64,000 bases of DNA from Auanema rhodensis (Eukaryota; Animalia; Nematoda): NCBI GenBank assembly GCA_964057225.1, contig OZ059894.1:16368001-16432000 (forward strand), given 5' to 3'. This document shows, piece after piece, positions 7,501 through 46,861 of this stretch. How positions within the stretch are numbered: the stretch's first letter is position 1; every line of letters begins with the position of its first letter. The notes under the pieces are model-generated. The model was not told the origin of the DNA, searched no databases, and saw only the letters and a program-made list of their open reading frames with translations. The position numbers and the translations under genes are program-made.

Positions 7501-7729
7501 ATTGTTTTATTCTATTTAACAGAAATATTATAAAAAGTAAAAGTTATTGAAACCGTTGTATGACACTATACTATATCAATATTCAAACATTTTCAAAATT
7601 ATTTTAGTGCTGCGAGAATTTTTCGAAGAAAAAAAAAGTTTCTACCAGTTGATTTTTTTTTGATTTTTTTCATCGAATTCTTACATTTGGTCTAACCAAA
7701 AATTAAAATAGAGATATAGAGAGAAAGAT

Positions 7730-7771
<42 letters not shown>

Positions 7772-9091
7772 GTAGGAACAGATTGTTCCTTGATGCAAAA
7801 ATCACATGATCAAATCATACTTTAACATTTGAATCTTCCGTTCCACTAAACTATATAGATATATATGTCTTTTTGTGAAAAAGAGAGAAATATTATAGAT
7901 TAATGTATTTAAAATATAAATATTGTTAAATACAATTGTATTCAATTATACTTCTCACATTTAAGCTTTAACGATGTCATGTATGCATAGTCATACAGCA
8001 GAAGTTTAAGCTTTTAAATAGAACGAGAGGGGAATGAGGGTTTGGGTAGACTATGGAATGCTGTACTCTTCTTCCAATCCGTTTCTTTTCACTCGTTTTG
8101 TCGTTTTTTTGGTGTTAGAAGATCTGACAATTCTTTCATTTCATTACTGAATATGGTAGATGATTAAACAAAAAAAAGAAGATTTTTCTGTAGTTTTGAA
8201 ATCTACGGTAAGAAAATCGTTTTATACTCCCCTCTCTTTTTCCTTCTCCCCCGTCATATATTCTTGTAACCTAATCATTTTCAATATAAATAACAAAGAA
8301 AAGAAATAATAATAATAATTTCATGATTTTATATGTAAACATGTTATAGATATAAGACTTATACTATTTATTTCTTCTTTATACTTACTTACTTGCCTTA
8401 CGAACTAATTTTCTTTCAGTATGTCAGCGTTTGTTTCTCTTTCTTTTGCTGATTTTCGTTTTACTTCGCATTTCATGCTTTTGCTTTGCCTCCGTCGTCA
8501 TGCTCATCATCCTCTTTTCTCCCGCCGTCACCCTCATCAACTTCCTCTTCTCTTCTTCTTCTTCTTCTGCTTCTCTTGAATGTAGTATTTTCAACATACA
8601 TATAGTTTGACTACATTGTTTATGATATTAGCTTTTTTTTCTGTTAGAAAATCATCATAGTGAAGAGGAAGAAGACAGATAGAAGAATATATACCACTCG
8701 GCATGCCGTTGAGTAGTATTTTCTTTTCGCGATATGAGAAGATGAAGAGAAAAATTCAGTCTAATTCATCATGAGCCATTACTTCTCTATCTCTAACAGA
8801 TATTTTCTTGTTTTTTTTTCATTGTCATCTGATCTTGTGCTGTCAAACATACGTTCTCCCTTTCTGTTCCATTTTTTTTTATTCTTCATCTCTATTATCC
8901 GTGACGCTAATGAAGTCATCGCCTCAGGCTGTCATAGCTGTGCTGTCGTCCTGGTTACAGATGCTTAAGTCATATTCAAGCATAATCAACCTGCTTTCGT
9001 TGTCAATTAGCACTTAAGGCGTAATCCTAATCATGCTCTATTACGTTACAGGTTTATGATGGAATTATTTCCAATTCAATGAGAACTGTTG

Positions 9092-9094
<3 letters not shown>

Positions 9095-9154
<60 letters not shown>
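9095..9154. repeat. (TC)30 microsatellite
   Basis: Direct reading. Confidence 0.95.
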
Positions 9155-9158
<4 letters not shown>

Positions 9159-10327
9159 CCCCTCTCTTTCTCTCTCTCTTTATTTTGAACAATATCATCT
9201 TGAATATGAAAAAGAAATTTTACAAATTACAATTACTATAATATATAAAGTTGAAAGACGAAGCATTAATAGTAATAAATATATAATTTGAAGACCTTTT
9301 GCAAATTTCTCATTTGTATTTTAGAAAATAAAAACTGAAATCATAAGATTTAATATTGTTTTAATAACTAATAAATAAATATATTATTAATACCTCATTG
9401 TAAGCTGTATGTGAGACTTCTTATATACATCATAAGCATATGTTATATGATATATCTCACTATACTATATATATCTTTTCCTTAATCGCTTATTTTTAAT
9501 TTATTCTTCTTCTTTTCGAGACATTTATCTTCTTTTTCTTTTTGTATTTTCTTCATCTCTTACTTTTTTCCATCCTATATCTTTTTCTTTTATTTGTAGT
9601 TCTTTATATTTTTTTCATATTTTGTCCAAATTTTAAAATTCAAATTTGTATCTTTTTTTCGTTTCAGTTAAATTTCAAATGTTCTTTCAACTAATTTCTT
9701 AATGAAAGTAAGATAATATTATGAATAACATTGAGCTGAAACAACTCGTTTACATATTGAAATTGCTGTCTGCCTTCATCTCTTATTGAAATTCAATGCC
9801 ACGTGGTGTTGTTGGTCGGTTAAGAGTTGCCATAGAAGGCTCTCAACACCTGCCATCCAGAAATGATTATTCCATGTGTTATGAGTATAATGTCTGTTCA
9901 TATATATATAGTGTATTATAGTATTTCCATGAATAATAACAGATCAATTACATATGTATCCTTAATGTACAGACTGGCTTCTTTTGTGTTTATAGCATCA
10001 CCTACTCCCACCACTCCATACAACCCCCCCCCCTCTCTACCACTACGACAACCACCACTATTCTCATCACCAACGCTTCATATACTGCCCTTCCCCCCCC
10101 CCCATCCAAATCCAAATCATAGAAATCGTCACAGTTATGTGATAATGACGTGAATCTTATTATGCGTTAGCTTACCATCGATGATGACAACGGCATTCGT
10201 GAAGTTAGTATCGTTGTCAGTCCTGATATCAAGCTTTTTCAAGAAGCAACAACTAACAGCTGTGAAATTGTCTGTTTCATCGTCATTCCTTGTTTTCAGC
10301 CACACCTCTTTAATTTTCTCACATTCT

Positions 10328-27012: not shown

Positions 27013-28704
27013 ATGCCTGGTCCACTTTCTACCATCGGTACGGGAATTCTTCAAACTCATGTCACGCTTGAAGATGTTCAAGAAGCTATTCAGAAATCTT
27101 TGAACACTACAGCCACTTTTGGCCCTAAATTAGAAATTAAAAACATAGGAGAAGGAATTGTAAGTCAATATTAATATTAATATTTATGTTATTTTGTATT
27201 TCTAGGGTTATTATTCTCGTATTTGTCTTATGAAACCTGACTGGCAAAATCCAACCCCTAATCTTCCACCTTATTTTGTTGTTAAGGTTTAACATAATAT
27301 TATCTTCTACAGTATATATATTTATGATTAATTGAAGATTATTAGCCAGCTAGCTATGATTGAAGCTGATGGTTACAGTGCCGTTACTGATTTCCTTGAA
27401 TTGAAAAGCCCAGGGGTAAATAGTTGAAAGTTCTTCAAAATGACACAAAACAATTTCAGTTTCTTTTAACTGAAATTGCTTCATATGAACTGTTCACCAA
27501 GTATGCCCCAGGTCAATTACCTTTAGGAAAAGTAAGTTTTAGTATGGTGAATATGAAATTATTATGTGGTTTGTTAGTTGTTAGGCTATAAAAAGCTGGA
27601 TGAAGATAATAACTCTAAAGGATTTTTCATTATGGATTATATTGAAGATTTGACTCCAATTCATTTGTTTGATGATTTAAATCTTGAAAATACTGATGAG
27701 GTTTTTCATAATTATCGAAAAAGGAAATACAAATTTGTATTCAGGTTATTAGGGCTATTGCTAAGATGCAGGCAATCGGTTGTAAATTCACCGAAAAAGA
27801 AAGAGCTCCATTTCCACTGCAGACATTTTCAGTTACATTTGGATTGGATGTTTGCCTAGCTGTAAGATATTAGTTTTTTTTTCTTTTCAAAATGGGAATT
27901 GAAGACATGTAATCAAACAATAGAAGGATTGAAAGAGGTTGATCATCCACAAGTCAAAAGTTTACTCGGAGATTTGGAAACATCCATTAAACGAAGAATC
28001 ACACAAGAGGAATTGGAATATTTCGACAACATTTGTGAAAATTTGAGTATGATAACACGTTATGTTTGAACATTTGAACATCATACCTTTTATTATAGAT
28101 ATTAAACGTGTTTTTGGTCATTGTGATCTCTGGAGCCCTAATGTTCTTTGGACAAAGAAATCAAATGGTGAATTATCTTTAAAAGCTATTGTTGATTTTC
28201 AAGTAAGAAATAATAATTTTATAAAATATAATAAAGAAATATCTTATAGTTGGCATCATTCTGTAACCCTGTTATTGATATTATTGTTTTTCTCATATGT
28301 AATCTAACAGCCGAAACACGTCGTCAAAATTGGAAGAACATTTTGAAAAACTTTTCGGAATATTTGAAACAAGAAACTGGTGGTGAAGAACCATTTACTC
28401 AGAAACAGGTGAATTCAAGTTCTAAATTCATTCTTATAATGATTTTATAGCTGGAATATTGTTACTTACGTTGTTTCCCACTGTTGGTTTTCATGGTTTT
28501 CGCAATGGTTGGTCCCATATACTTAAGTGAGCTGAAAGCTCATCCTGATGATACGGAAAAAGTGAATTTCTTCAATTTCATAAACAAAATAATTATTTTT
28601 ACTATTTACAGGTTAATAATGTTTTTGAAAAGAAACTCATTTCTACATTACTTGATGCAATTGAGATTGATAAACAAATTGAAAATGGCCAAATTAAACT
28701 TTAA
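27013..28704 (+). CDS. DUF1679 / EcKinase-like (choline-kinase fold) protein, gene A, 11 exons, intact
   Basis: Starts MPGPLSTIGTGILQTHVTLEDVQEAIQKSL..GEGIGYYSRICLMKPDW; catalytic HCDLWSPN and DFQ motifs; open through all 11 exons to ..GQIKL*. Confidence 0.9.
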
Positions 28705-29114
28705 AATGTTTCAAATCTTAAATTGAAGTCTTATAAATAAGAATATTCTTGTTATCTTTACCCTGTTCGTGAAATAAATATTCCTTTTTGTGATTAATTA
28801 TTCAAAATAATCAGTTTATGAAGTTTTGTGATCAGAGCTATAACATATTCATATAATAATATATGAATGAATACACATTTTATCTTATCATTAAAAATTA
28901 TTTTAAACCGGAAATCATTGTTTTTTAAAAAAACAAATAAACATTATACTTTTTAGAAATATGAAACAACATATAATAAACCATAGATGTCTTCTATTCA
29001 TGGAAACATTGTACTTATCAAAGTATTTTATTCAATTATCAGGTTAATATTCATTCCTGAGCTTAAGTTTTATATACAATCAGTACATGTTTAATTTTCA
29101 TTTCTAGATCGTAC

Positions 29115-31411
29115 CTACAGTTTCCAATGAATGTTGGAATCCTCCATCAAAGCAACCAGTTTTTCAATTATGTTATGATCCTACAAAAATTTAAAATCTT
29201 GAATGAAATTGAATAAAATTTTCTTGCCGAAATGATAACTTCTGGGTTAATTTGCTTGAGATACTTCATTATAGATGGAACAAAAGGGACTATGAGACCA
29301 GCCACAAGTGGGATAAATATCTTATAACTTTCTTCCAACTTAAGTTTTAAAATAATTAGAAAATGATAGTTGAATGATGAAACTTACTTGTTCGTATGTG
29401 TATGGCATTTCACCTTCAACTTCTTCTTTCAAGTACCCATAGAATGTTTCCAGAAGCTCCTTCCAGTGTTTCCTGCGATCAGCACAACTCAGCGTAGAAC
29501 ACAATAAACATGAAATATCAACAGCAACACAAGCAAACGAAGAGATCTGAATTTCCATAAGTTTATAAAGTTTTGGCTTTTTTCTGTTATTCCCCCCCCC
29601 TCGCTAGGCTCCGCCTCTTCTGCCGAAACGCGCGCAGTTTTACAACCTGGGGATGGAATAAACTCTAAACCATCCTCGCGCACAACTTCCAGACTCCAGG
29701 GGTCTGGGGGTATAACCCCAATGGAAAAAGTTACTTAAATAAACATTTTTAATCTATAAATCAGCTTTATTCTCTCTCTCTCTCCCTCTCGCATAAAAAG
29801 TACAATATCTTCAAAAATGATATCAAATAGGTATTTTTGATTGTTCCGTCTTCTCCACACAAAAACTTTCATAACCCTTTTAAAACATGTGAACTTTGTA
29901 CTTCTTTCCATTGGGGTTGAACTTCTCCCCACTGGGGGAGACCCCCCAGACCCCTGGAGTCTGGAAGTTGTGCGCGAGGATGGTTTAGAGTTTATTCCAT
30001 CCCCAGGTTGTAAAACTGCGCGCGTTTCGGCAGAAGAGGCGGAGCCTAGCGAGAGGGGGGGGGGAATAACAGAAAAGAACTAAATTTTTTGAAAAACAAA
30101 AAATACCTGGAAATCAATATGTGCTTTCACATTCACATTTTCGTTCACTTTGCTCCATAGGATGTTTGCACTCCATAAATCTCCATGACAGAATACACGC
30201 TTCATACCTACAATTATTAAGAATCAATAATCTCTGAAGACTTAAGATTAACCAAGAGTGTCAGGCATGTTATCCATTTTTTCATAAAATGATTTTCCTA
30301 TAAAGGATTTCAAATTATCGAAGAATTCATTTATGGTCTCTTCGTGTTCTGGCCCGCACATATTCTTAATATCATTTTTCATTTCCCGTAGCATCTGAGA
30401 AACATCAGTTTGAATGATTGAATAACTTATAATTCAGAGTTTACATCTTCTTTGTACATATCACCAAATGTTTCGGACAAATATTTAGTGGTAAAGGTAC
30501 TTCTTTCCTCATCAGTGAATCTCTCTCCTATTCCCTCCCAGATTGCCACAGATCGTAGACACTGAAAATTAAAAATTAGTTTTTAAAACTTTATGAAAAT
30601 TCAAAACCTGTTTTACAGCATCAATAGTAACGTTGTTAGTATAATGGTATGGTGTCAACTCATCAAAGTATTCCATGATTAAGAATCCTTTGAGTGTATT
30701 AACTTCATCGAATTTACGACTGGCATAAATCTGAAAAAATATTTTAGAATTACGAAATAGAAGGAATGAAAATCAACCGTTTCAATTGAATTTGAAAATG
30801 AAAATAAAATTGGTGATTCACGTCAACGCGTCTTCACGCGAACGCGTGTTTACGTGAAATATGCTAATCAGACCAACCTTTGGAAGAGGAATTCTGCCTT
30901 CGTCGTATTTCTTTAGTAAATTGTAAGTATTAACTTCATTGTTATGAACCTAAAAATCAAAATTCTTTATCAACAAACTTATTTATCATCATTACCCTTG
31001 TGCATGCTTGTTCAATGCATTTAGCCATAGCTGTTGCCTCAGTTCCATTGAGATGGCTGCTGAACTCGATAGCCGTGATGGGAGTACAAATCTATAGTAT
31101 AGACAAGATTAATTATAAATTCAAATAGTTAAGGAAATACTTTTAGAACAAAAGCCTTGGGAAGATCTTCAGAAACATTCTGCCAATCGGGATTGATCAG
31201 ACATGTACGAGACATCATTCCCTAAAGATCATATTAATACAAAATTCTGAACAAGAAGATGAATTACATTTCCTTCGCCAATGTTCTTAAATGATTTTTC
31301 TGATCCAAATGTGGCTTTAGTGCCCAAAGCACTTTGCATTTCCTGTTCAACTTCATCCCAATGCAAATGGGTATCAGCAATACCATCAGATTTTTGTGCA
31401 AAAGCAGACAT
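29115..31411 (-). CDS. DUF1679 / EcKinase-like protein, gene B copy 1, intact
   Basis: CTTCAG-AAC-ATG start; MSAFAQKSDGIADTHLHWDEVEQ, HNNE, HGDLWSAN, HIDFQ motifs; ends ..SNIHWKL*. Intron 8 holds a MITE; intron 10 needs a GC donor. Confidence 0.9.
29575..30080. mobile_element. Non-autonomous long-TIR element (Mutator-like MITE), copy 1; interior inverted relative to copies 2-4
   Basis: ~135-bp GC-rich TIRs; 9-bp TSD TAAA(G/T)TTTT; absent from the homologous 46-nt intron of genes C and D. Superfamily inferred from TSD length and long TIRs only. Confidence 0.85.
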
Positions 31412-31675
31412 GTTCTGAAGAGAAAATTGAATTGAATAGAGTTGAGAATGGAACAATACAGTTATGATTAAGAGTATAAAACATATAGTTTGATTAATGG
31501 AATAATTTCCTTTTTATATAAAAAAAGATTTTTCTGAAGAGTTCAAGTTCATGTTTAGAGAGAAAGAGAGATGAATTGAAACTATAGTTGATTTGAGAGA
31601 CAACAGACATTTGTGATAATATTGCAGAATTGTCTGTACGATTGTGCAATAACCCGTCATAGGTTTCAATGAACG

Positions 31676-32838
31676 TTGTGATCTCTGGAGCCCTAATGTT
31701 CTTTGGACAAAGAAATCAAATGGTGAATTATCTTTAAAAGCTATTGTTGATTTTCAAGTAAGAAATAATAATTTTATAAAATATAATAAAGAAATATCGG
31801 GGCTGGTTTAGTAGTTGCCACCCCCCATTTTCATGTTTTCCCTATGCTAATTTCGGCGGTAGCGGGATCCGATCTTATAAGTTAGGATTAATAACCCGTA
31901 CCACTGCCGACTACGCTATAACCGTCATCGTTTAGCTTGCTAGGGTATGCTATATGCAAATGATGTTGCGCTAATGTAAAAACGGCGTATTTTCACTTCT
32001 TTTGGATTCAAAATAAATCTGCACGCAGTAGAAAAATTAAAAAAAAAGTCGTTAGTTTAAAATATTGTCATTAATTCGAAAAATGAAATAGTTTCTTATT
32101 TTCTGAATCTTATTTTGATATTTAAGTATGCTTCTATACATCTGGGGGGGATACCCCCCCAGACCCCCCGGGTTTGACATTGGGCACTCCCGCTGTATTA
32201 GATTTATATGCAGTGCCCAAAAACAAACTTTCTGATAAAATCTAAACTTTTTCGTATCATCTTCTTATTATTATTCAGAAAACTTTAATTATTCTGATAA
32301 AATTTTGATCGAGCGCATTAGCATACGGCATGCGCCACAGAGGGGGGTGGCATCTACTAAACAAGCGCCGAAATATCTTATAGTTGGCATCATTCTGTAA
32401 CCCTGTTATTGATATTATTGTTTTTCTCATATGTAATCTAACAGCCGAAACACGTCGTCAAAATTGGAAGAACATTTTGAAAAACTTTTCGGAATATTTG
32501 AAACAAGAAACTGGTGGTGAAGAACCATTTACTCAGAAACAGGTGAATTCAAGTTCTAAATTCATTCTTATAATGATTTTATAGCTGGAATATTGTTACT
32601 TACGTTGTTTCCCACTGTTGGTTTTCATGGTTTTCGCAATGGTTGGTCCCATATACTTAAGTGAGCTGAAAGCTCATCCTGATGATACGGAAAAAGTGAA
32701 TTTCTTCAATTTCATAAACAAAATAATTATTTTTACTATTTACAGGTTAATAATGTTTTTGAAAAGAAACTCATTTCTACATTACTTGATGCAATTGAGA
32801 TTGATAAACAAATTGAAAATGGCCAAATTAAACTTTAA
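31676..32838 (+). pseudogene. 5'-truncated copy of gene A (mid exon 8 to exon 11), interrupted by a MITE
   Basis: Begins at CDLWSPN; lacks exons 1-7 and an in-frame ATG. Confidence 0.85.
31799..32369. mobile_element. 571-bp MITE, probably Merlin superfamily
   Basis: Perfect 8-bp TSD GAAATATC (31791-31798, 32370-32377); 28-bp imperfect TIRs starting GG (GGGGCTGGTTTAGTAGTTGCCACCCCCC vs rc GGCGCTTGTTTAGTAGATGCCACCCCCC); empty site in the four sister repeats. Confidence 0.85.
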
Positions 32839-33248
32839 AATGTTTCAAATCTTAAATTGAAGTCTTATAAATAAGAATATTCTTGTTATCTTTACCCTGT
32901 TCGTGAAATAAATATTCCTTTTTGTGATTAATTATTCAAAATAATCAGTTTATGAAGTTTTGTGATCAGAGCTATAACATATTCATATAATAATATATGA
33001 ATGAATACACATTTTATCTTATCATTAAAAATTATTTTAAACCGGAAATCATTGTTTTTTAAAAAAACAAATAAACATTATACTTTTTAGAAATATGAAA
33101 CAACATATAATAAACCATAGATGTCTTCTATTCATGGAAACATTGTACTTATCAAAGTATTTTATTCAATTATCAGGTTAATATTCATTCCTGAGCTTAA
33201 GTTTTATATACAATCAGTACATGTTTAATTTTCATTTCTAGATCGTAC

Positions 33249-33999
33249 CTACAGTTTCCAATGAATGTTGGAATCCTCCATCAAAGCAACCAGTTTTTCA
33301 ATTATGTTATGATCCTACAAAAATTTAAAATCTTGAATGAAATTGAATAAAATTTTCTTGCCGAAATGATAACTTCTGGGTTAATTTGCTTGAGATACTT
33401 CATTGTAGATGGAACAAAAGGAACTATGAGACCAGCCGCAAGTGGGATAAATATCTTATAACTTTCTTCCAACTTAAGTTTTAAAATAATTAGAAAATCA
33501 TAGTTAAATGATGAAACTTACTTGTTCGTATGTGTATGGCATTCCACCTTCAACTTCTTCTTTCAAGTACCCATAGAATGTTTCCAGAAGTTCCTTCCAG
33601 TGTTTCCTACGATCAGCACCACTCAGCGTAGAACACAATAAACATAAAATATCAACAGCAACACAAGCAAACGAAGAGTTCTGAATTTCCATAAGTTTAT
33701 AAATTTTTGGCATTTTTCTGTTATTCCCCCCCCCCCTCGCTAGGCTCCGCCTCTTCTGCCGAAACGCGCGCAGTTTTACAACCTGGGGATAGAATAAACT
33801 CTAAACCATCCTCGCGCACAACTTCCAGACTCCAGGGGTCGGGGGGGTCTTCCCCAGTGGGAAGAAGTTCAACCCCAATGGAAAGAAGTACAAAGTTCAC
33901 ATGTTTTAAAAGGGTTATGAAAGTTTTTGTGTGGAGAAGACGTAGAGGAATAATCAAAAATACCTATTTGATATCATTTTTGAAGATATTGTACTTTTT

Positions 34000-34040
<41 letters not shown>

Positions 34041-35568
34041 AAGCTGATTTATAGATTAAAAATGTTTATTTAAGTAACTTTTCCCATTGGGGTTATACCC
34101 CCAGACCCCTTGAGTCTGGAAGTTGTGCGCGAGGATGGTTTAGAGTTTATTCCATCCCCAGGTTGTAAAACTGCGCGCGTTTCGGCAGAAGAGGCGGAGC
34201 CTAGCGAGAGGGGGGGGGGGAAATAACAGAAAAGAACTAAATTTTTTGAAAAACAAAAAATACCTGGAAATCAATATGTGCTTTCACATTCACATTTTCG
34301 TTCACTTTGCTCCATAGGATGTTTGCACTCCATAAATCTCCATGACAGAATACACGCTTCATACCTACAATTATTAAGAATCAATAATCTCTGAAGACTT
34401 AAGATTAACCAAGAGTGTCAGGCATGTTATCCATTTTTTCATAAAATGATTTTCCTATAAAGGATTTCAAATTATCGAAGAATTCATTTATGGTCTCTTC
34501 GTGTTCTGGCCCGCACATATTCTTAATATCATTTTTCATTTCCCGTAGCATCTGAGAAACATCAGTTTGAATGATTGAATAACTTATAATTCAGAGTTTA
34601 CATCTTCTTTGTACATATCACCAAATGTTTCGGACAAATATTTAGTGGTAAAGGTACTTCTTTCCTCATCAGTGAATCTCTCTCCTATTCCCTCCCAGAT
34701 TGCCACAGATCGTAGACACTGAAAATTAAAAATTAATTTTTAAAACTTTATGAAAATTCAAAACCTGTTTTACAGCATCAATAGTAACGTTGCTAGTAAG
34801 ATGGTATGGTGTCAACTCATCAAAGTATTCCATGATTAAGAATCCTTTGAGTGTATTAACTTCATCGAATTTACGACTGGCATAAATCTGAAAAAATATT
34901 TTAGAATTACGAAATAGAAGGAATGAAAATCAACCGTTTCAATTGAATTTGAAAATGAAAATAAAATTGTCAATTCACGTCAACGCGTCTTCACGCGAAC
35001 GCGTGTTTACGTGAAATATGCTAATCAGACCAACCTTTGTAAGAGGAATTCTGCCTTCGTCGTATTTCTTTAGTAAATTGTAAGTATTAACTTCATTGTT
35101 ATGAACCTAAAAATCAAAATTCTTTATCAACAAACTTATTTATCATCATTACCCTTCTGTATGCTTGTTCAACGCATTCAGCCATAGCTGTTGCCTCAGT
35201 TCCATTGAGATGGCTGCTGAACTCGATAGCCGTGATGGGAGTACAAATCTATAGTATAGACAAGATTAATTATAAATTCAAATAGTTAAGGAAATACTTT
35301 TAGAACAAAAGCCTTGGGAAGATCTTCAGAAACATTCTGCCAATCGGGATTGATCAGACATGTACGAGACATCATTCCCTAAAGATCATATTAATACAAA
35401 ATTCTGAACAAGAAGATGAATTACATTTCCTTCGCCAATGTTCTTAAATGATTTTTCTGATCCAAATGTGGCTTTAGTGCCCAAGGCACTTTGCATTTCC
35501 TGTTCAACTTCATCCCAATGCAAATGGGTATCAGCAATACCATCAGATTTTTGTGCAAAAGCAGACAT
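33249..35568 (-). CDS. DUF1679 / EcKinase-like protein, gene B copy 2, intact
   Basis: Same 11-exon structure as B1; several amino-acid differences; no stop or frameshift seen. Confidence 0.88.
33709..34237. mobile_element. Mutator-like MITE, copy 2
   Basis: Same TIRs; perfect TAAATTTTT TSD; internal (GA)n. Confidence 0.85.
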
Positions 35569-35832
35569 GTTCTGAAGAGAAAATTGAATTGAATAGAGTT
35601 GAGAATGGAACAATACAGTTATGATTAAGAGTATAAAACATATAGTTTGATTAATGGAATAATTTCCTTTTTATATAAAAAAAGATTTTTCTGAAGAGTT
35701 CAAGTTCATGTTTAGAGAGAAAGAGAGATGAATTGAAACTATAGTTGATTTGAGAGACAACAGACATTTGTGATAATATTGCAGAATTGTCTGTACGATT
35801 GTGCAATAACCCGTCATAGGTTTCAATGAACG

Positions 35833-36416
35833 TTGTGATCTCTGGAGCCCTAATGTTCTTTGGACAAAGAAATCAAATGGTGAATTATCTTTAAAAGCTA
35901 TTGTTGATTTTCAAGTAAGAAATAATAATTTTATAAAATATAATAAAGAAATATCTTATAGTTGGCATCATTCTGTAACCCTGTTATTGATATTATTGTT
36001 TTTCTCATATGTAATCTAACAGCCGAAACACGTCGTCAAAATTGGAAGAACATTTTGAAAAACTTTTCGGAATATTTGAAACAAGAAACTGGTGGTGAAG
36101 AACCATTTACTCAGAAACAGGTGAATTCAAGTTCTAAATTCATTCTTATAATGATTTTATAGCTGGAATATTGTTACTTACGTTGTTTCCCACTGTTGGT
36201 TTTCATGGTTTTCGCAATGGTTGGTCCCATATACTTAAGTGAGCTGAAAGCTCATCCTGATGATACGGAAAAAGTGAATTTCTTCAATTTCATAAACAAA
36301 ATAATTATTTTTACTATTTACAGGTTAATAATGTTTTTGAAAAGAAACTCATTTCTACATTACTTGATGCAATTGAGATTGATAAACAAATTGAAAATGG
36401 CCAAATTAAACTTTAA
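35833..36416 (+). pseudogene. 5'-truncated copy of gene A
   Basis: Matches 28121-28704. Confidence 0.85.
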
Positions 36417-36826
36417 AATGTTTCAAATCTTAAATTGAAGTCTTATAAATAAGAATATTCTTGTTATCTTTACCCTGTTCGTGAAATAAATATTCCTTTT
36501 TGTGATTAATTATTCAAAATAATCAGTTTATGAAGTTTTGTGATCAGAGCTATAACATATTCATATAATAATATATGAATGAATACACATTTTATCTTAT
36601 CATTAAAAATTATTTTAAACCGGAAATCATTGTTTTTTAAAAAAACAAATAAACATTATACTTTTTAGAAATATGAAACAACATATAATAAACCATAGAT
36701 GTCTTCTATTCATGGAAACATTGTACTTATCAAAGTATTTTATTCAATTATCAGGTTAATATTCATTCCTGAGCTTAAGTTTTATATACAATCAGTACAT
36801 GTTTAATTTTCATTTCTAGATCGTAC

Positions 36827-37576
36827 CTACAGTTTCCAATGAATGTTGGAATCCTCCATCAAAGCAACCAGTTTTTCAATTATGTTATGATCCTACAAAA
36901 ATTTAAAATCTTGAATGAAATTGAATAAAATTTTCTTGCCGAAATGATAACTTCTGGGTTAATTTGCTTGAGATACTTCATTGTAGATGGAACAAAAGGA
37001 ACTATGAGACCAGCCGCAAGTGGGATAAATATCTTATAACTTTCTTCCAACTTAAGTTTTAAAATAATTAGAAAATCATAGTTAAATGATGAAACTTACT
37101 TGTTCGTATGTGTATGGCATTCCACCTTCAACTTCTTCTTTCAAGTACCCATAGAATGTTTCCAGAAGTTCCTTCCAGTGTTTCCTACGATCAGCACCAC
37201 TCAGCGTAGAACACAATAAACATAAAATATCAACAGCAACACAAGCAAACGAAGAGTTCTGAATTTCCATAAGTTTATAAATTTTTGGCATTTTTCTGTT
37301 ATTCCCCCCCCCCTCGCTAGGCTCCGCCTCTTCTGCCGAAACGCGCGCAGTTTTACAACCTGGGGATAGAATAAACTCTAAACCATCCTCGCGCACAACT
37401 TCCAGACTCCAGGGGTCGGGGGGGTCTTCCCCAGTGGGAAGAAGTTCAACCCCAATGGAAAGAAGTACAAAGTTCACATGTTTTAAAAGGGTTATGAAAG
37501 TTTTTGTGTGGAGAAGACGTAGAGGAATAATCAAAAATACCTATTTGATATCATTTTTGAAGATATTGTACTTTTT

Positions 37577-37617
<41 letters not shown>

Positions 37618-39145
37618 AAGCTGATTTATAGATTAAAAATGTTTATTTAAGTAACTTTTCCCATTGGGGTTATACCCCCAGACCCCTTGAGTCTGGAAGT
37701 TGTGCGCGAGGATGGTTTAGAGTTTATTCCATCCCCAGGTTGTAAAACTGCGCGCGTTTCGGCAGAAGAGGCGGAGCCTAGCGAGAGGGGGGGGGGGAAA
37801 TAACAGAAAAGAACTAAATTTTTTGAAAAACAAAAAATACCTGGAAATCAATATGTGCTTTCACATTCACATTTTCGTTCACTTTGCTCCATAGGATGTT
37901 TGCACTCCATAAATCTCCATGACAGAATACACGCTTCATACCTACAATTATTAAGAATCAATAATCTCTGAAGACTTAAGATTAACCAAGAGTGTCAGGC
38001 ATGTTATCCATTTTTTCATAAAATGATTTTCCTATAAAGGATTTCAAATTATCGAAGAATTCATTTATGGTCTCTTCGTGTTCTGGCCCGCACATATTCT
38101 TAATATCATTTTTCATTTCCCGTAGCATCTGAGAAACATCAGTTTGAATGATTGAATAACTTATAATTCAGAGTTTACATCTTCTTTGTACATATCACCA
38201 AATGTTTCGGACAAATATTTAGTGGTAAAGGTACTTCTTTCCTCATCAGTGAATCTCTCTCCTATTCCCTCCCAGATTGCCACAGATCGTAGACACTGAA
38301 AATTAAAAATTAATTTTTAAAACTTTATGAAAATTCAAAACCTGTTTTACAGCATCAATAGTAACGTTGCTAGTAAGATGGTATGGTGTCAACTCATCAA
38401 AGTATTCCATGATTAAGAATCCTTTGAGTGTATTAACTTCATCGAATTTACGACTGGCATAAATCTGAAAAAATATTTTAGAATTACGAAATAGAAGGAA
38501 TGAAAATCAACCGTTTCAATTGAATTTGAAAATGAAAATAAAATTGTCAATTCACGTCAACGCGTCTTCACGCGAACGCGTGTTTACGTGAAATATGCTA
38601 ATCAGACCAACCTTTGTAAGAGGAATTCTGCCTTCGTCGTATTTCTTTAGTAAATTGTAAGTATTAACTTCATTGTTATGAACCTAAAAATCAAAATTCT
38701 TTATCAACAAACTTATTTATCATCATTACCCTTCTGTATGCTTGTTCAACGCATTCAGCCATAGCTGTTGCCTCAGTTCCATTGAGATGGCTGCTGAACT
38801 CGATAGCCGTGATGGGAGTACAAATCTATAGTATAGACAAGATTAATTATAAATTCAAATAGTTAAGGAAATACTTTTAGAACAAAAGCCTTGGGAAGAT
38901 CTTCAGAAACATTCTGCCAATCGGGATTGATCAGACATGTACGAGACATCATTCCCTAAAGATCATATTAATACAAAATTCTGAACAAGAAGATGAATTA
39001 CATTTCCTTCGCCAATGTTCTTAAATGATTTTTCTGATCCAAATGTGGCTTTAGTGCCCAAGGCACTTTGCATTTCCTGTTCAACTTCATCCCAATGCAA
39101 ATGGGTATCAGCAATACCATCAGATTTTTGTGCAAAAGCAGACAT
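36827..39145 (-). CDS. DUF1679 / EcKinase-like protein, gene B copy 3, intact
   Basis: Apparently identical to B2 apart from homopolymer length in the intronic MITE. Confidence 0.88.
37287..37814. mobile_element. Mutator-like MITE, copy 3
   Basis: As copy 2. Confidence 0.85.
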
Positions 39146-39409
39146 GTTCTGAAGAGAAAATTGAATTGAATAGAGTTGAGAATGGAACAATACAGTTATG
39201 ATTAAGAGTATAAAACATATAGTTTGATTAATGGAATAATTTCCTTTTTATATAAAAAAAGATTTTTCTGAAGAGTTCAAGTTCATGTTTAGAGAGAAAG
39301 AGAGATGAATTGAAACTATAGTTGATTTGAGAGACAACAGACATTTGTGATAATATTGCAGAATTGTCTGTACGATTGTGCAATAACCCGTCATAGGTTT
39401 CAATGAACG

Positions 39410-39993
39410 TTGTGATCTCTGGAGCCCTAATGTTCTTTGGACAAAGAAATCAAATGGTGAATTATCTTTAAAAGCTATTGTTGATTTTCAAGTAAGAAAT
39501 AATAATTTTATAAAATATAATAAAGAAATATCTTATAGTTGGCATCATTCTGTAACCCTGTTATTGATATTATTGTTTTTCTCATATGTAATCTAACAGC
39601 CGAAACACGTCGTCAAAATTGGAAGAACATTTTGAAAAACTTTTCGGAATATTTGAAACAAGAAACTGGTGGTGAAGAACCATTTACTCAGAAACAGGTG
39701 AATTCAAGTTCTAAATTCATTCTTATAATGATTTTATAGCTGGAATATTGTTACTTACGTTGTTTCCCACTGTTGGTTTTCATGGTTTTCGCAATGGTTG
39801 GTCCCATATACTTAAGTGAGCTGAAAGCTCATCCTGATGATACGGAAAAAGTGAATTTCTTCAATTTCATAAACAAAATAATTATTTTTACTATTTACAG
39901 GTTAATAATGTTTTTGAAAAGAAACTCATTTCTACATTACTTGATGCAATTGAGATTGATAAACAAATTGAAAATGGCCAAATTAAACTTTAA
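39410..39993 (+). pseudogene. 5'-truncated copy of gene A
   Basis: Matches 28121-28704. Confidence 0.85.
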
Positions 39994-40403
39994 AATGTTT
40001 CAAATCTTAAATTGAAGTCTTATAAATAAGAATATTCTTGTTATCTTTACCCTGTTCGTGAAATAAATATTCCTTTTTGTGATTAATTATTCAAAATAAT
40101 CAGTTTATGAAGTTTTGTGATCAGAGCTATAACATATTCATATAATAATATATGAATGAATACACATTTTATCTTATCATTAAAAATTATTTTAAACCGG
40201 AAATCATTGTTTTTTAAAAAAACAAATAAACATTATACTTTTTAGAAATATGAAACAACATATAATAAACCATAGATGTCTTCTATTCATGGAAACATTG
40301 TACTTATCAAAGTATTTTATTCAATTATCAGGTTAATATTCATTCCTGAGCTTAAGTTTTATATACAATCAGTACATGTTTAATTTTCATTTCTAGATCG
40401 TAC

Positions 40404-41151
40404 CTACAGTTTCCAATGAATGTTGGAATCCTCCATCAAAGCAACCAGTTTTTCAATTATGTTATGATCCTACAAAAATTTAAAATCTTGAATGAAATTG
40501 AATAAAATTTTCTTGCCGAAATGATAACTTCTGGGTTAATTTGCTTGAGATACTTCATTATAGATGGAACAAAAGGGACTATGAGAGCAGCCACAAGTGG
40601 GATAAATATCTTATAACTTTCTTCCAACTTAAGTTTTAAAATAATTAGAAAATCATAGTTGAATGATAAAACTTACTTGTTCGTATGTGTATGGCATTTC
40701 ACCTTCAACTTCTTCTTTCAAGTATCCATAGAATGTTTCCAGAAGTTCCTTCCAGTGTTTCCTACGATCAGCACCACTCAGCGTAGAACACAATAAACGT
40801 GAAATATCAACAGCAACACAAGCAAACGAAGAGATCTGAATTTCCATAAGTTTATAAATTTTTGGCTTTTTTCTGTTATTCCCCCCCCTCGCTAGGCTCC
40901 GCCTCTTCTGCCGAAACGCGCGCAGTTTTACAACCTGGGGATGGAATAAACTCTAAACCATCCTCGCGCACAACTTCCAGACTCCAGGGGTCTGGGGGGT
41001 CTCCCCCAGTGGGGAGAAGTTCAACCCCAATGGAAAGAAGTACAAAGTTCACATGTTTTAAAAGGGTTATGAAAGTTTTTGTGTGGAGAAGACGTAGAGG
41101 AATAATCAAAAATACCTATTTGATATCATTTTTGAAGATATTGTACTTTTT

Positions 41152-41198
<47 letters not shown>

Positions 41199-42728
41199 AA
41201 GCTGATTTATAGATTAAAAATGTTTATTTAAGTAACTTTTCCCATTGGGGTTATACCCCCAGACCCCTTGAGTCTGGAAGTTGTGCGCGAGGATGGTTTA
41301 GAGTTTATTCCATCCCCAGGTTGTAAAACTGCGCGCGTTTCGGCAGAAGAGGCGGAGCCTAGCGAGAGGGGGGGGGGGGGAAATAACAGAAAAGAACTAA
41401 ATTTTTTGAAAAACAAAAAATACCTGGAAATCAATATGTGCTTTCACATTCACATTTTCGTTCACTTTGCTCCATAGGATGTTTGCACTCCATAAATCTC
41501 CATGACAGAATACACGCTTCATACCTACAATTATTAAGAATCAATAATCTCTGAAGACTTAAGATTAACCAAGAGTGTCAGGCATGTTATCCATTTTTTC
41601 ATAAAATGATTTTCCTATAAAGGATTTCAAATTATCGAAGAATTCATTTATGGTCTCTTCGTGTTCTGGCCCGCACATATTCTTAATATCATTTTTCATT
41701 TCCCGTAGCATCTGAGAAACATCAGTTTGAATGATTGAATAACTTATAATTCAGAGTTTACATCTTCTTTGTACATATCACCAAATGTTTCGGACAAATA
41801 TTTAGTGGTAAAGGTACTTCTTTCCTCATCAGTGAATCTCTCTCCTATTCCCTCCCAGATTGCCACAGATCGTAGACACTGAAAATTAAAAATTAATTTT
41901 TAAAACTTTATGAAAATTCAAAACCTGTTTTACAGCATCAATAGTAACGTTGTTAGTATAATGGTATGGTGTCAACTCATCAAAGTATTCCATGATTAAG
42001 AATCCTTTGAGTGTATTAACTTCATCGAATTTACGACTGGCATAAATCTGAAAAAATATTTTAGAATTACGAAATAGAAGGAATGAAAATCAACCGTTTC
42101 AATTGAATTTGAAAATGAAAATAAAATTGGTGATTCACGTCAACGCGTCTTCACGCGAACGCGTGTTTACGTGAAATATGCTAATCAGACCAACCTTTGG
42201 AAGAGGAATTCTGCCGTCGGAATATTTGTTTAGTAAATTGTAAGTGTCAATTTCATTGTTATGAACCTAAAAATCAAAATTCTTTATCAACAAACTTATT
42301 TATCATCATTACCCTTGTGCATGCTTGTTCAACGCATTCAGCCATAGCTGTTGCCTCAGTTCCATTGAGATGGCTGCTGAACTCGATAGCCGTGATGGGA
42401 GTACAAATCTATAGTATAGACAAGATTAATTATAAATTCAAATAGTTAAGGAAATACTTTTAGAACAAAAGCCTTGGGAAGATCTTCAGAAACATTCTGC
42501 CAATCGGGATTGATCAGACATGTACGAGACAGCATTCCCTAAAGATCATATTAATACAAAATTCTGAACAAGAAGATGAATTACATTTCCTTCGCCAATG
42601 TTCTTAAATGATTTTTCTGATCCAAATGTGGCTTTAGTGCCCAAGGCACTTTGTATTTCCTGTTCAACTTCATCCCAATGCAAATGGGTATCAGCAATAC
42701 CATCAGATTTTTGTGCAAAAGCAGACAT
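40404..42728 (-). CDS. DUF1679 / EcKinase-like protein, gene B copy 4, intact
   Basis: Same structure as B1; distinct exon 4 (HNNEIDTYNLLNKYSDGR). Confidence 0.88.
40864..41397. mobile_element. Mutator-like MITE, copy 4
   Basis: Same orientation as copies 2-3, but shares several nucleotide states with copy 1. Confidence 0.85.
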
Positions 42729-45015: not shown

Positions 45016-46861
45016 ATGTCTGCTTTTGCACAAAAATCTGATGGTATTGCTGATACCCATTTGCATTGGGATGAAGTTGAACAGGAAATGCAAAGTGCCT
45101 TGGGCACTAAAGCCACATTTGGATCAGAAAAATCATTTAAGAACATTGGCGAAGGAAATGTAATTCATCGTTTTTCTCTTTAATTTCATGTAAAATCAAT
45201 GTTCAGGGATTCCTTTCACGCATATGTCTGATCAAGCCTGATTGGCAGAATGGTTCTGAAGATCTTCCCAAGGCTTTTGTTTTGAAAGTATTTCCTTAAC
45301 TATTTGAATTTATAATTAATCTTCTCTATACTATAGATTTGTACTCCAATATCAATGTTGGACTTCAGTAGTAAAATTGAAGGTGATTTCGATATGACTC
45401 CAATCATTACTAACATTGAAAAACTCTGCACAAATGTATATATTTTAATTTTGAGTTTTAAATATTAAACTTAACTATAGGTTCATAACAATGAAGTTAA
45501 TACTTACAATCTACTAAAGAAATATTCCGACACCAGAATTCCTCTTCCAAAGGTTAGTCTGATTAGCATATTTCACGTAAACACGCGTTCACGTAAACAC
45601 GCGTTCACGTAAACACGCGTTCACGTGAAGACGCGTTCACGTGAATCACCAATTTTATTTTCATTTTCAAATTCAATTGAAACGGTTGATTTTCATTCCT
45701 TCTATTTCCTAATTCTAAAAGATTTTTTCAGATTTATGCCAGTCGTAAATTCGATGAAGTTAATAAACTCAAAGGATTCTTAATCATGGAATACTTTGAT
45801 GATTTAGTTCCTTGTCACATTACTGATAACATCAGCATTAATGCTGTCAAAAAAGTTTTAAAGTTCATATTTACTCTTATTCTGTTTTTTTTCTTTTTTA
45901 GTGTCTTCGATCAGTTGCAATTTGGGAAAGCATTGGTCTCAAGTTCACTGAAGAGGAAAGTAGTAACTTCTCTAAAAACTTTTTGGCTGAATCTTTCGGT
46001 GATATGTTTAAAGAAGAAGTTAGCTTAGAAATATCATTTAATCATTAATTTTATATTTATTCAGCTGTTAGGGCAAATGAGAAAGGGCTTACATGATCTC
46101 TGTGGGGCAGAGTACGAAAACACGATTAACGATTTCTGCGATCATTTGGTTCACCTTATGGGTGATAGATATTACCGAAAATTGGATCAAATGCCAGAAG
46201 CTCTTGGTAAAGTTCCAAAGTTTAATAATTTTATTTTATTAATGTTTAAAGGTATGAAACGTGTATTCTGTCATGGTGATCTATGGAGTACTAACATCTT
46301 ATGGACCAAAAAGAATGGAGAATTTGATATTCGAGGTCACATTGATTTCCAGGTATTTTCTTTTTTATCAAAAAATTTATAATTTTATGGAAATTCAGAC
46401 AACATCGTTGGCATCTCCAGCTATCGACCTTGCACGTCTGTTTTCTGCAACGTTGAGTGGTGCTGATCGCAGGAAACACTGGAAGGAGCTTCTGGAAACA
46501 TTCTATGGATACTTGAAAGAAGAAGTTGAAGGTGAAATGCCATACACATACGAACAAGTAAGTTTCATCATTCAACTATCATTTTCTAATTATTTTAAAA
46601 CTTAAGTTGGAAGAAAATTACAAGAAGTTCATTCCATTTGGTGCTTTCTTTGCCGTACCCGTAGTTGCACCTCTTTTGGACTTTATAAAGAACAACAAAC
46701 CTGACTCTTTATCATATGTATGTTATTCTTTTCAAATTTTGAAATATACAAGTTCACTATATATTTATATTTAAATTTTGTTTTAGGTTGAAGAAATCGT
46801 TGTAGAAAAAGTCGTAGCTTTGATGGAAGATGCTAACATCCACTGGGAACCTTATAATTAA
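45016..46861 (+). CDS. DUF1679 / EcKinase-like protein, gene C, 11 exons, intact
   Basis: Exon 1 near-identical to B; HNNE, HGDLWSTN, HIDFQ motifs; ends ..ANIHWEPYN*. Confidence 0.9.
45572..45645. repeat. 16-bp minisatellite (TTCACGTAAACACGCG)n in intron 4 of gene C
   Basis: Three exact units plus TTCACGTGAAGACGCG and TTCACGTGAA; fewer units in B and D. Confidence 0.85.

Follow-up and report, generated by a model that had tools for sequence, protein, structure and literature searches.

The window analysed here is a stretch of 64,000 nucleotides from the nematode Auanema rhodensis (contig OZ059894.1, positions 16,368,001 to 16,432,000 of the forward strand). On its minus strand lie four kinase-like genes of the DUF1679/EcKL type, arranged in tandem, each of which carries, at the same site in one of its introns, a copy of a short transposable element with long terminal inverted repeats (TIRs). 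The four copies, B1 to B4, lie in tandem units of 3.58 kb (4.13 kb for the B1 unit, owing to an extra insertion) that are 98.6-99.97% identical to each other. The outer arms of the element are in the same orientation in the four copies, and the core that they enclose reads in B1 as the reverse complement of the core in B2, B3, and B4. We attribute this, with a probability of roughly 0.8, to one inversion of the spacer between the inverted repeats in the ancestor of B2-B4, following a single insertion that took place before the tandem amplification. All coordinates are window positions.

The element, its intron, and its insertion site

The exon upstream of the element ends in ...HIDFQ and the downstream exon starts with ISSFAC... 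or NSSFAC.... Matched to the profiles one by one, these flanking exons cover positions 266-301 and 299-363 of the Pfam DUF1679 profile, with matches to EcKL and APH as well. The presence of the DUF1679 family, along with very small introns, marks the source as a rhabditid nematode. Together with the GT..AG splice sites on the minus strand, these matches bear out the original prediction, made from the sequence alone, that the element sits within an intron. The host introns measure 560-588 nt, and the element makes up all of this except about 54 nt. An inverted, diverged paralog at 44.8-46.6 kb precisely lacks the element and has a single TAAATTTTT at the site. This makes the element a true insertion, received by an intron of about 45 nt in a single event that predates the amplification of the gene. 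B2-B4 are flanked by identical duplicated copies of TAAATTTTT, and the left copy of B1 reads TAAAGTTTT. Of the 9-bp target-site duplication that had been predicted, the presence of the same duplication at the same site stands; its length is 8 bp at the level of the family, since two other insertions have 8 bp, and the duplication of the B copies reads equally well as 8 bp (AAATTTTT) plus a mutated terminal base. The features of the locus are as follows.

29547-30106, minus strand: host intron of B1, 560 nt, GT..AG, with exon translations and DUF1679/EcKL matches on both sides
33681-34263, 37259-37840, and 40836-41423, minus strand: host introns of B2, B3, and B4, with GT..AG splice sites
29566-29574 (left, TAAAGTTTT) and 30081-30089 (right, TAAATTTTT), no strand: target-site duplication of B1
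46371-46379, no strand: empty site in the inverted, diverged paralog; element absent, target sequence TAAATTTTT once, intron of about 50 nt
29575-30080, minus strand: B1 element, 506 bp; left arm 29575-29710, core 29711-29942, right arm 29943-30080; core orientation relative to the termini as is canonical in the family
29600-29710, no strand: 111-nt arm segment of B1, 100% identical to the reverse complement of its right-arm partner; exchange interval
33709-34237, minus strand: B2 element, 529 bp; arms 33709-33846 and 34098-34237, core 33847-34097; core reverse-complemented relative to B1
37287-37814, minus strand: B3 element, 528 bp; arms 37287-37423 and 37675-37814, core 37424-37674; core identical to that of B2
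40864-41397, minus strand: B4 element, 534 bp; arms 40864-40998 and 41256-41397, core 40999-41255; orientation as in B2 and B3, longest (GA)n

A scan for inverted repeats between 29.5 and 41.4 kb returned four hairpin elements with arms of 133-138 nt, 93-95% complementary, and 204-227 nt between them. With the limits fixed by anchors at the termini, the elements measure 506-534 bp, their inverted arms 136-142 nt, and the cores of B1 to B4 232, 251, 251, and 257 nt, respectively. Folded as DNA, the element is a very stable hairpin (-209 kcal/mol, z = -31), and the B2 intron folded as RNA reaches -322 kcal/mol (z = -26); smaller G6-ATA-C6 hairpins lie at the joints between arms and core. The open reading frames (ORFs) in the element are short and run through the arms, and a search of the element against Rfam gave no family above threshold, with one sub-threshold chance match only. 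The homopolymer runs of the outer arms (29592-29600, 30051-30061, and their counterparts in B2-B4) differ in length in every copy, from about C8 to C11 on the left and from about G10 to G13 on the right, which is fast slippage within otherwise near-identical copies.

In size, in the length of its TIRs, in having a duplication (TAAATTTTT or AAATTTTT), and in the existence of an empty paralogous site, the element resembles MITEs (miniature inverted-repeat transposable elements). It does not have their high copy number: a search of the genome (181 Mb in 112 contigs, with copy counts to be taken as lower bounds) gave at least six full-length copies, four of which arose by gene duplication, and a few old fragments. 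The element is thus MITE-like in structure and low in copy number. The other full-length copies among the matches listed, at C3:5047246 and C4:6466250, are 82-83% identical to the B copies and have 8-bp target duplications of their own (AAATATAC at C3 and GAAGATAT at C4). As the B duplication is compatible with AAATTTTT, there are three independent insertions with duplications of 8 bp, a length that points to the hAT superfamily. The genome search, in which a transposase or an autonomous partner was not sought, showed no longer relative with the same termini.

Inversion of the core between fixed arms

When the four elements are aligned directly, the arms match column by column and the core of B1 does not; when B1 is reverse-complemented, the alignment of the core is restored and that of the termini is broken. 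The turned core of B1 differs from that of B4 by three substitutions in 232 nt (1.3%) and by two indels, one being the 5-bp GTAGA and the other the length of the (GA)n tract. Chance cannot produce such a match. The divergence equals that of the flanks (98.6-98.7% identity between B1 and B3), which makes this a plain inversion of orthologous sequence. The original prediction of a core of about 230 bp that is reverse-complemented in B1 relative to B2-B4 is thereby confirmed.

The position of the exchange can be bracketed because the two arms carry asymmetric markers. On the outside, everything stays in place in four of four copies, as had been predicted. The left arm has the terminus GGC(T/A)TTTTT, starting GGC(T/A)TTTTTCTG, and a C-run followed by TCGC, with TCGCTAGG directly after the run; in the right arm GCGAGA precedes a G-run, and the terminus is AAAGAAC. 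The reverse complement of the right arm starts (A)GTTCTTTTCTG, and after its C-run comes TCTCGCTAGG. On the inside, the innermost, diverged 25 nt or so of the TIR move with the core; one side carries GTCTCCCCCAGTGGGGAG and the other TATAACCCCAATGGG, and the sequences GTCTCCCCCAGTGGGGAGAAGTT and TATAACCCCAATGGGAAAAGTT likewise mark the two sides of this moving part. The fixed and the moving markers enclose a segment of 111 nt in which the two arms of a copy differ at no position in B1, at one in B4, and at three in each of B2 and B3. As the outer markers stay and the inner ones move, the exchange took place within this segment. Arm position 97 (C/A) was considered for mapping the crossover more finely and proved uninformative: the A was derived on the B2-B4 stem and is absent from both arms of B1.

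The joints add to this picture. They show no filler, gain, or loss, and the sequence at the arm-core joint is identical in both states; neither the termini nor the flanks have changed between the states, and the same holds for a TC/GA indel marker and for the target duplication. An exact reverse complement, breakpoints inside the repeats, and clean junctions are what characterises inversion of the spacer of an inverted repeat. The prediction that the core was flipped in place between TIRs of about 135 bp, and not by re-insertion of the whole element, is therefore supported, since all markers fit and re-insertion would have shifted the termini.

Polarity, history, and rival explanations

Which of the two states came first can be judged from the rest of the family. 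At C3 and C4, the core end ...AACCCCAAT(T/G)GAAAGAAGTAC is next to the terminus GGTTC, whereas the (GA)n end is next to the terminus GGCTC, which is written ...GAGCC. Three older fragments can be scored as well: in L009 and L020 the (GA)n side ends in ...GAGCC, which is the GGCTC type, and in L018 the other, non-(GA)n side starts with GGTTC. Of the two fixed termini of the B copies, the left one belongs to the GGC type and the right one to the GTTC type. The canonical arrangement is that of B1, where GGC is joined to the (GA)n end; in B2-B4, GGC is joined to the other end. The original prediction had proposed tabulating core orientation against the termini in other genomic copies; in this tabulation, all five scorable copies are canonical, like B1 and unlike B2-B4. 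Because five other family copies share the arrangement of B1, the flipped state is probably that of B2-B4, and B1, though in the minority, would be the original. The prediction had treated B1 as the odd copy, which is right as to the numbers and probably wrong as to the ancestry.

Other characters of the core can be read against the same outgroups. Relative to C3 and C4, B2-B4 have four derived states in common: the GTAGA insertion, a C to T change in GGAACAAT, the loss of the GGG that interrupts the GA repeat, and the C to A change at arm position 97. The core of B1 has one private substitution along with the ancestral states, that is, no GTAGA, the C in GGAACAAT, and an interrupted GA repeat; it is 98.7% identical to B4 and 87.5% identical to C3 (28 of 224 positions differ). 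The (GA)n tract itself is short and interrupted in B1, C3, and C4, and it is pure and expanded to 17-20 units (34-40 nt) in the flipped B2-B4.

These observations are best accounted for by the following history. A low-copy TIR element, predicted to be non-coding, with arms of about 140 nt and a core of about 230-250 nt, inserted once into an intron, roughly 45 nt long, of a kinase-like gene of the DUF1679/EcKL type that was later amplified in tandem. Later, a single exchange between the two arms of one copy, within the 111-nt (nearly) identical stretch, turned the spacer and left the termini, the target duplication, and the gene untouched. This flip most likely occurred in the common ancestor of B2-B4, after which the flipped allele would have been multiplied, either through tandem duplication or through conversion from copy to copy. 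The exchange could have followed one of three routes: 1) an intramolecular crossover between the arms; 2) replication template switching across the hairpin at a stalled fork; or 3) repair of a break in the core, where the (GA)n tract is prone to H-DNA, primed from the opposite arm. At least 100 bases of perfect inverted homology at a distance of 230 nt make all three possible, with the same product. The (GA)n tract and the G6-ATA-C6 hairpins at the joints are plausible sites of stalling or breakage.

Four points weigh against this history or narrow what it can say. The polarity depends on a single diagnostic base at each terminus, which is T or C at position 3. The flanks, with 9 private sites in B1, 14 in B4, and 16 in B2/B3, yield a three-way star, so that the grouping of B2-B4 comes from characters inside the element. 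The orientation of B1 is that of one assembly. Finally, the sequence does not separate crossover, template switching, and break repair.

The dependence on one assembly raises the question of whether the spacer of one hairpin copy was simply written in the wrong orientation during assembly or polishing. The arms are longer than a short read, so short reads alone could not orient the spacer, and the locus is a near-identical tandem array. Yet the core of B1 is not a turned copy of a neighbour: it has a private state and ancestral states shared with distant copies, and its divergence from the neighbouring cores matches that of the flanks. Furthermore, the assembly, which is in 112 contigs, separates 3.6-kb units that are 99.97% identical, which implies reads far exceeding the 136-nt arms, and it is B1 that has the canonical arrangement of the family. 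We therefore regard an artefact as distinctly improbable. A separate origin of the two states, whether by excision and re-insertion, by independent insertion, by the existence of two opposite subfamilies, or by conversion overwriting the core, is scarcely credible. Long identical arms would admittedly allow a donor to pair in either register. The termini, the TC-indel marker, and the target duplication occupy the same position in four of four copies, which argues against re-insertion and independent insertion. The other full-length copies among the matches listed are two, both canonical and 82-83% identical, besides old fragments, so that the second, non-canonical subfamily for which the prediction had allowed did not appear. 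A donor for ectopic conversion is equally hard to find: the core of B1 is much closer to B4 than to C3, and it lacks the derived states of B2-B4 and was thus not copied from them. Re-insertion, independent insertion, and conversion from another copy are excluded or very unlikely.

An alternative of a different kind, also put forward in the original prediction, is that the core switches repeatedly through its long arms, in the germline or in the soma, so that the two states are snapshots of a flip-flop that could modulate the intron RNA. The means for this seem to be there, as the arms are long and near-perfect (111/111 in B1, 108-110/111 in B2-B4), the element folds into a highly stable hairpin, and reversible spacer flips are described at short repeats in yeast (PMC8604942). 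We nevertheless find it improbable, because one event on the B2-B4 stem accounts for all four copies: B2 and B3, whose cores are identical, and B4 share one state together with the four other derived characters, and there is one flip among six independent lineages. Under a fast equilibrium, the canonical state of the five other scorable lineages would have a chance of about 3%, and since the older family copies have less perfect arms, this bounds the flip rate only loosely. A recurrent switch is thus unsupported, and the term "invertible" under which the element had been announced is not borne out, as nothing supports recurrence. We strongly doubt the more general proposition that the loops of long-TIR hairpin elements flip at an appreciable rate in this nematode, which would make each intronic copy a two-state allele. 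If it were true, the loop strand of a 135-bp intronic double-stranded RNA would toggle, which could affect splicing, editing, and small-RNA production of the host gene.

Consequences, known systems, and neighbouring sequence

The stem of about 135 bp is the same in both states and brings the splice sites within about 55 nt of each other. As had been predicted, the flip alters the strand in the pre-mRNA, the loop containing (GA)n in B1 and (UC)n in B2-B4. Because the stem is unchanged and only the strand of the loop differs, the flip is likely to be neutral; cryptic splicing or RNA-binding proteins may be affected. The case is an unusually well-marked one, in which four orthologous copies with asymmetric markers in their arms, combined with an empty site and with outgroup copies, narrow the breakpoints to the 111-nt interval and indicate the polarity. 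It shows that a long-TIR element can have its interior turned around with no transposition involved. For transposon annotation, core orientation is accordingly an unreliable character for defining subfamilies. The case also bears on the use of such inversions as phylogenetic markers and on checks of assemblies at hairpins.

In the invertible switches Hin, Gin, and Fim, as in the flip-flop of the 2-micron plasmid and of the plastid inverted repeat, a segment between inverted repeats occurs in two orientations. The element differs from these systems in that no recombinase gene of a programmed switch lies in it or beside it, its 0.5 kb having no real ORF and its neighbours being exons of the kinase-like genes; it resembles passive recombination between repeats and not a switch. 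Closer parallels come from inverted repeats in yeast coding sequences, where spacer inversion and homogenisation of the arms by template switching, including a reversible "spacer flip", have been described (PMC8604942), and from human-chimpanzee microinversions, all of which are flanked by inverted repeats (PMC8755829). They share with the present case the exact reverse complement between repeats, the breakpoints inside the repeats, the lack of gain or loss, and the homogeneous arms. They differ in scale, with arms of some 10-16 nt around 2-5-nt spacers in yeast (PMC8604942) and inversions of 17-33 nt in primates (PMC8755829), as against arms of about 136 nt and spacers of 232-257 nt here, and in that the repeat is here the transposon's own pair of TIRs. 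With arms this long, an ordinary homologous crossover is as plausible as template switching.

Small inversions associated with hairpins in chloroplast genomes (Kelchner and Wendel 1996, cited in PMC12371153) offer a further likeness: the loop flips and the stem stays, and the inversions are non-coding, usually neutral, and can recur. They are organellar and 4-50 bp long, whereas the present inversion is nuclear, intronic, about 240 bp long, and lies in a mobile element. Among transposons, the PIF/Harbinger element MtPH-A6-4 of Medicago has an internal region that is inverted between copies with the TIRs in place (PMC2213677). That inversion was ascribed to internal tandem repeats and concerns dispersed copies, whereas here orthologous copies and arm markers tie the event to the TIRs. 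Tm1 of Meloidogyne (PMC3169594) is non-coding, as the present element is predicted to be, and is similar in having long TIRs (about 93% identical), asymmetric outermost motifs, a duplication of 8-10 bp, and an empty paralogous site; there is no relation in sequence, and the present element has TIRs without internal tandem repeats and a duplication of 8 bp where that of Tm1 is mostly 9. What we describe is a clean, ordinary inversion between inverted repeats, which reveals no new mechanism and no regulated switch.

The variation around the element has a structure of its own. Variable sites among the four units are strongly clustered, with 16 of them in 29271-29570, just left of the element, and none in 30081-30578 (500 bp on the right) or in 28237-29270 (the first 1 kb of the unit). 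Single-nucleotide differences private to B1 occur at 29365-29570 on the left (5 in 210 bp) and at 30579 on the right. The clustered stretch includes the downstream exon, in which the copies differ by five amino acids (I/N, S/L, C/R, C/G, E/G). This mosaic suggests conversion among copies or selection on the downstream exon. We also considered whether error-prone repair had left its mark on the element as an excess of mutations: B1 differs from the rest by 4 in about 450 nt, compared with 0.31% in the flanks overall, and the clustering of flank variation leaves no grounds for claiming an excess.

A second, unrelated TIR element, at 31799-32369, has 571 bp, an 8-bp duplication (GAAATATC), and TIRs of about 60 nt that are 76% complementary. 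It is present only in the copy of the repeated segment at the B1/B2 junction, which gives the B1 unit 4134 bp compared with 3578 bp. A 98% identical copy at C6:16956600 indicates that this family was recently mobile, and longer relatives of 1.4-1.9 kb occur on C3 and C5. An 89-bp internal piece of this element (32132-32220) matches at 84% a 281-bp satellite that fills many small contigs (C10-C63), where matches are spaced by 281 or 562 bp and Tandem Repeats Finder (TRF) reports a period of 281 with 97% matches, e.g., in L049 (G000:C63:10169-13255). The piece includes GGGGGTCTGGGGGG(G)TATCCCCCC, which is also found at the arm-core joint of the family of the flipped element (24 nt, 96%). Elsewhere in the window, a (GA)n-rich tract at 7687-7781 and a (TC)n tract at 9086-9192 form an inverted pair of 60-80 nt, 1.3 kb apart.

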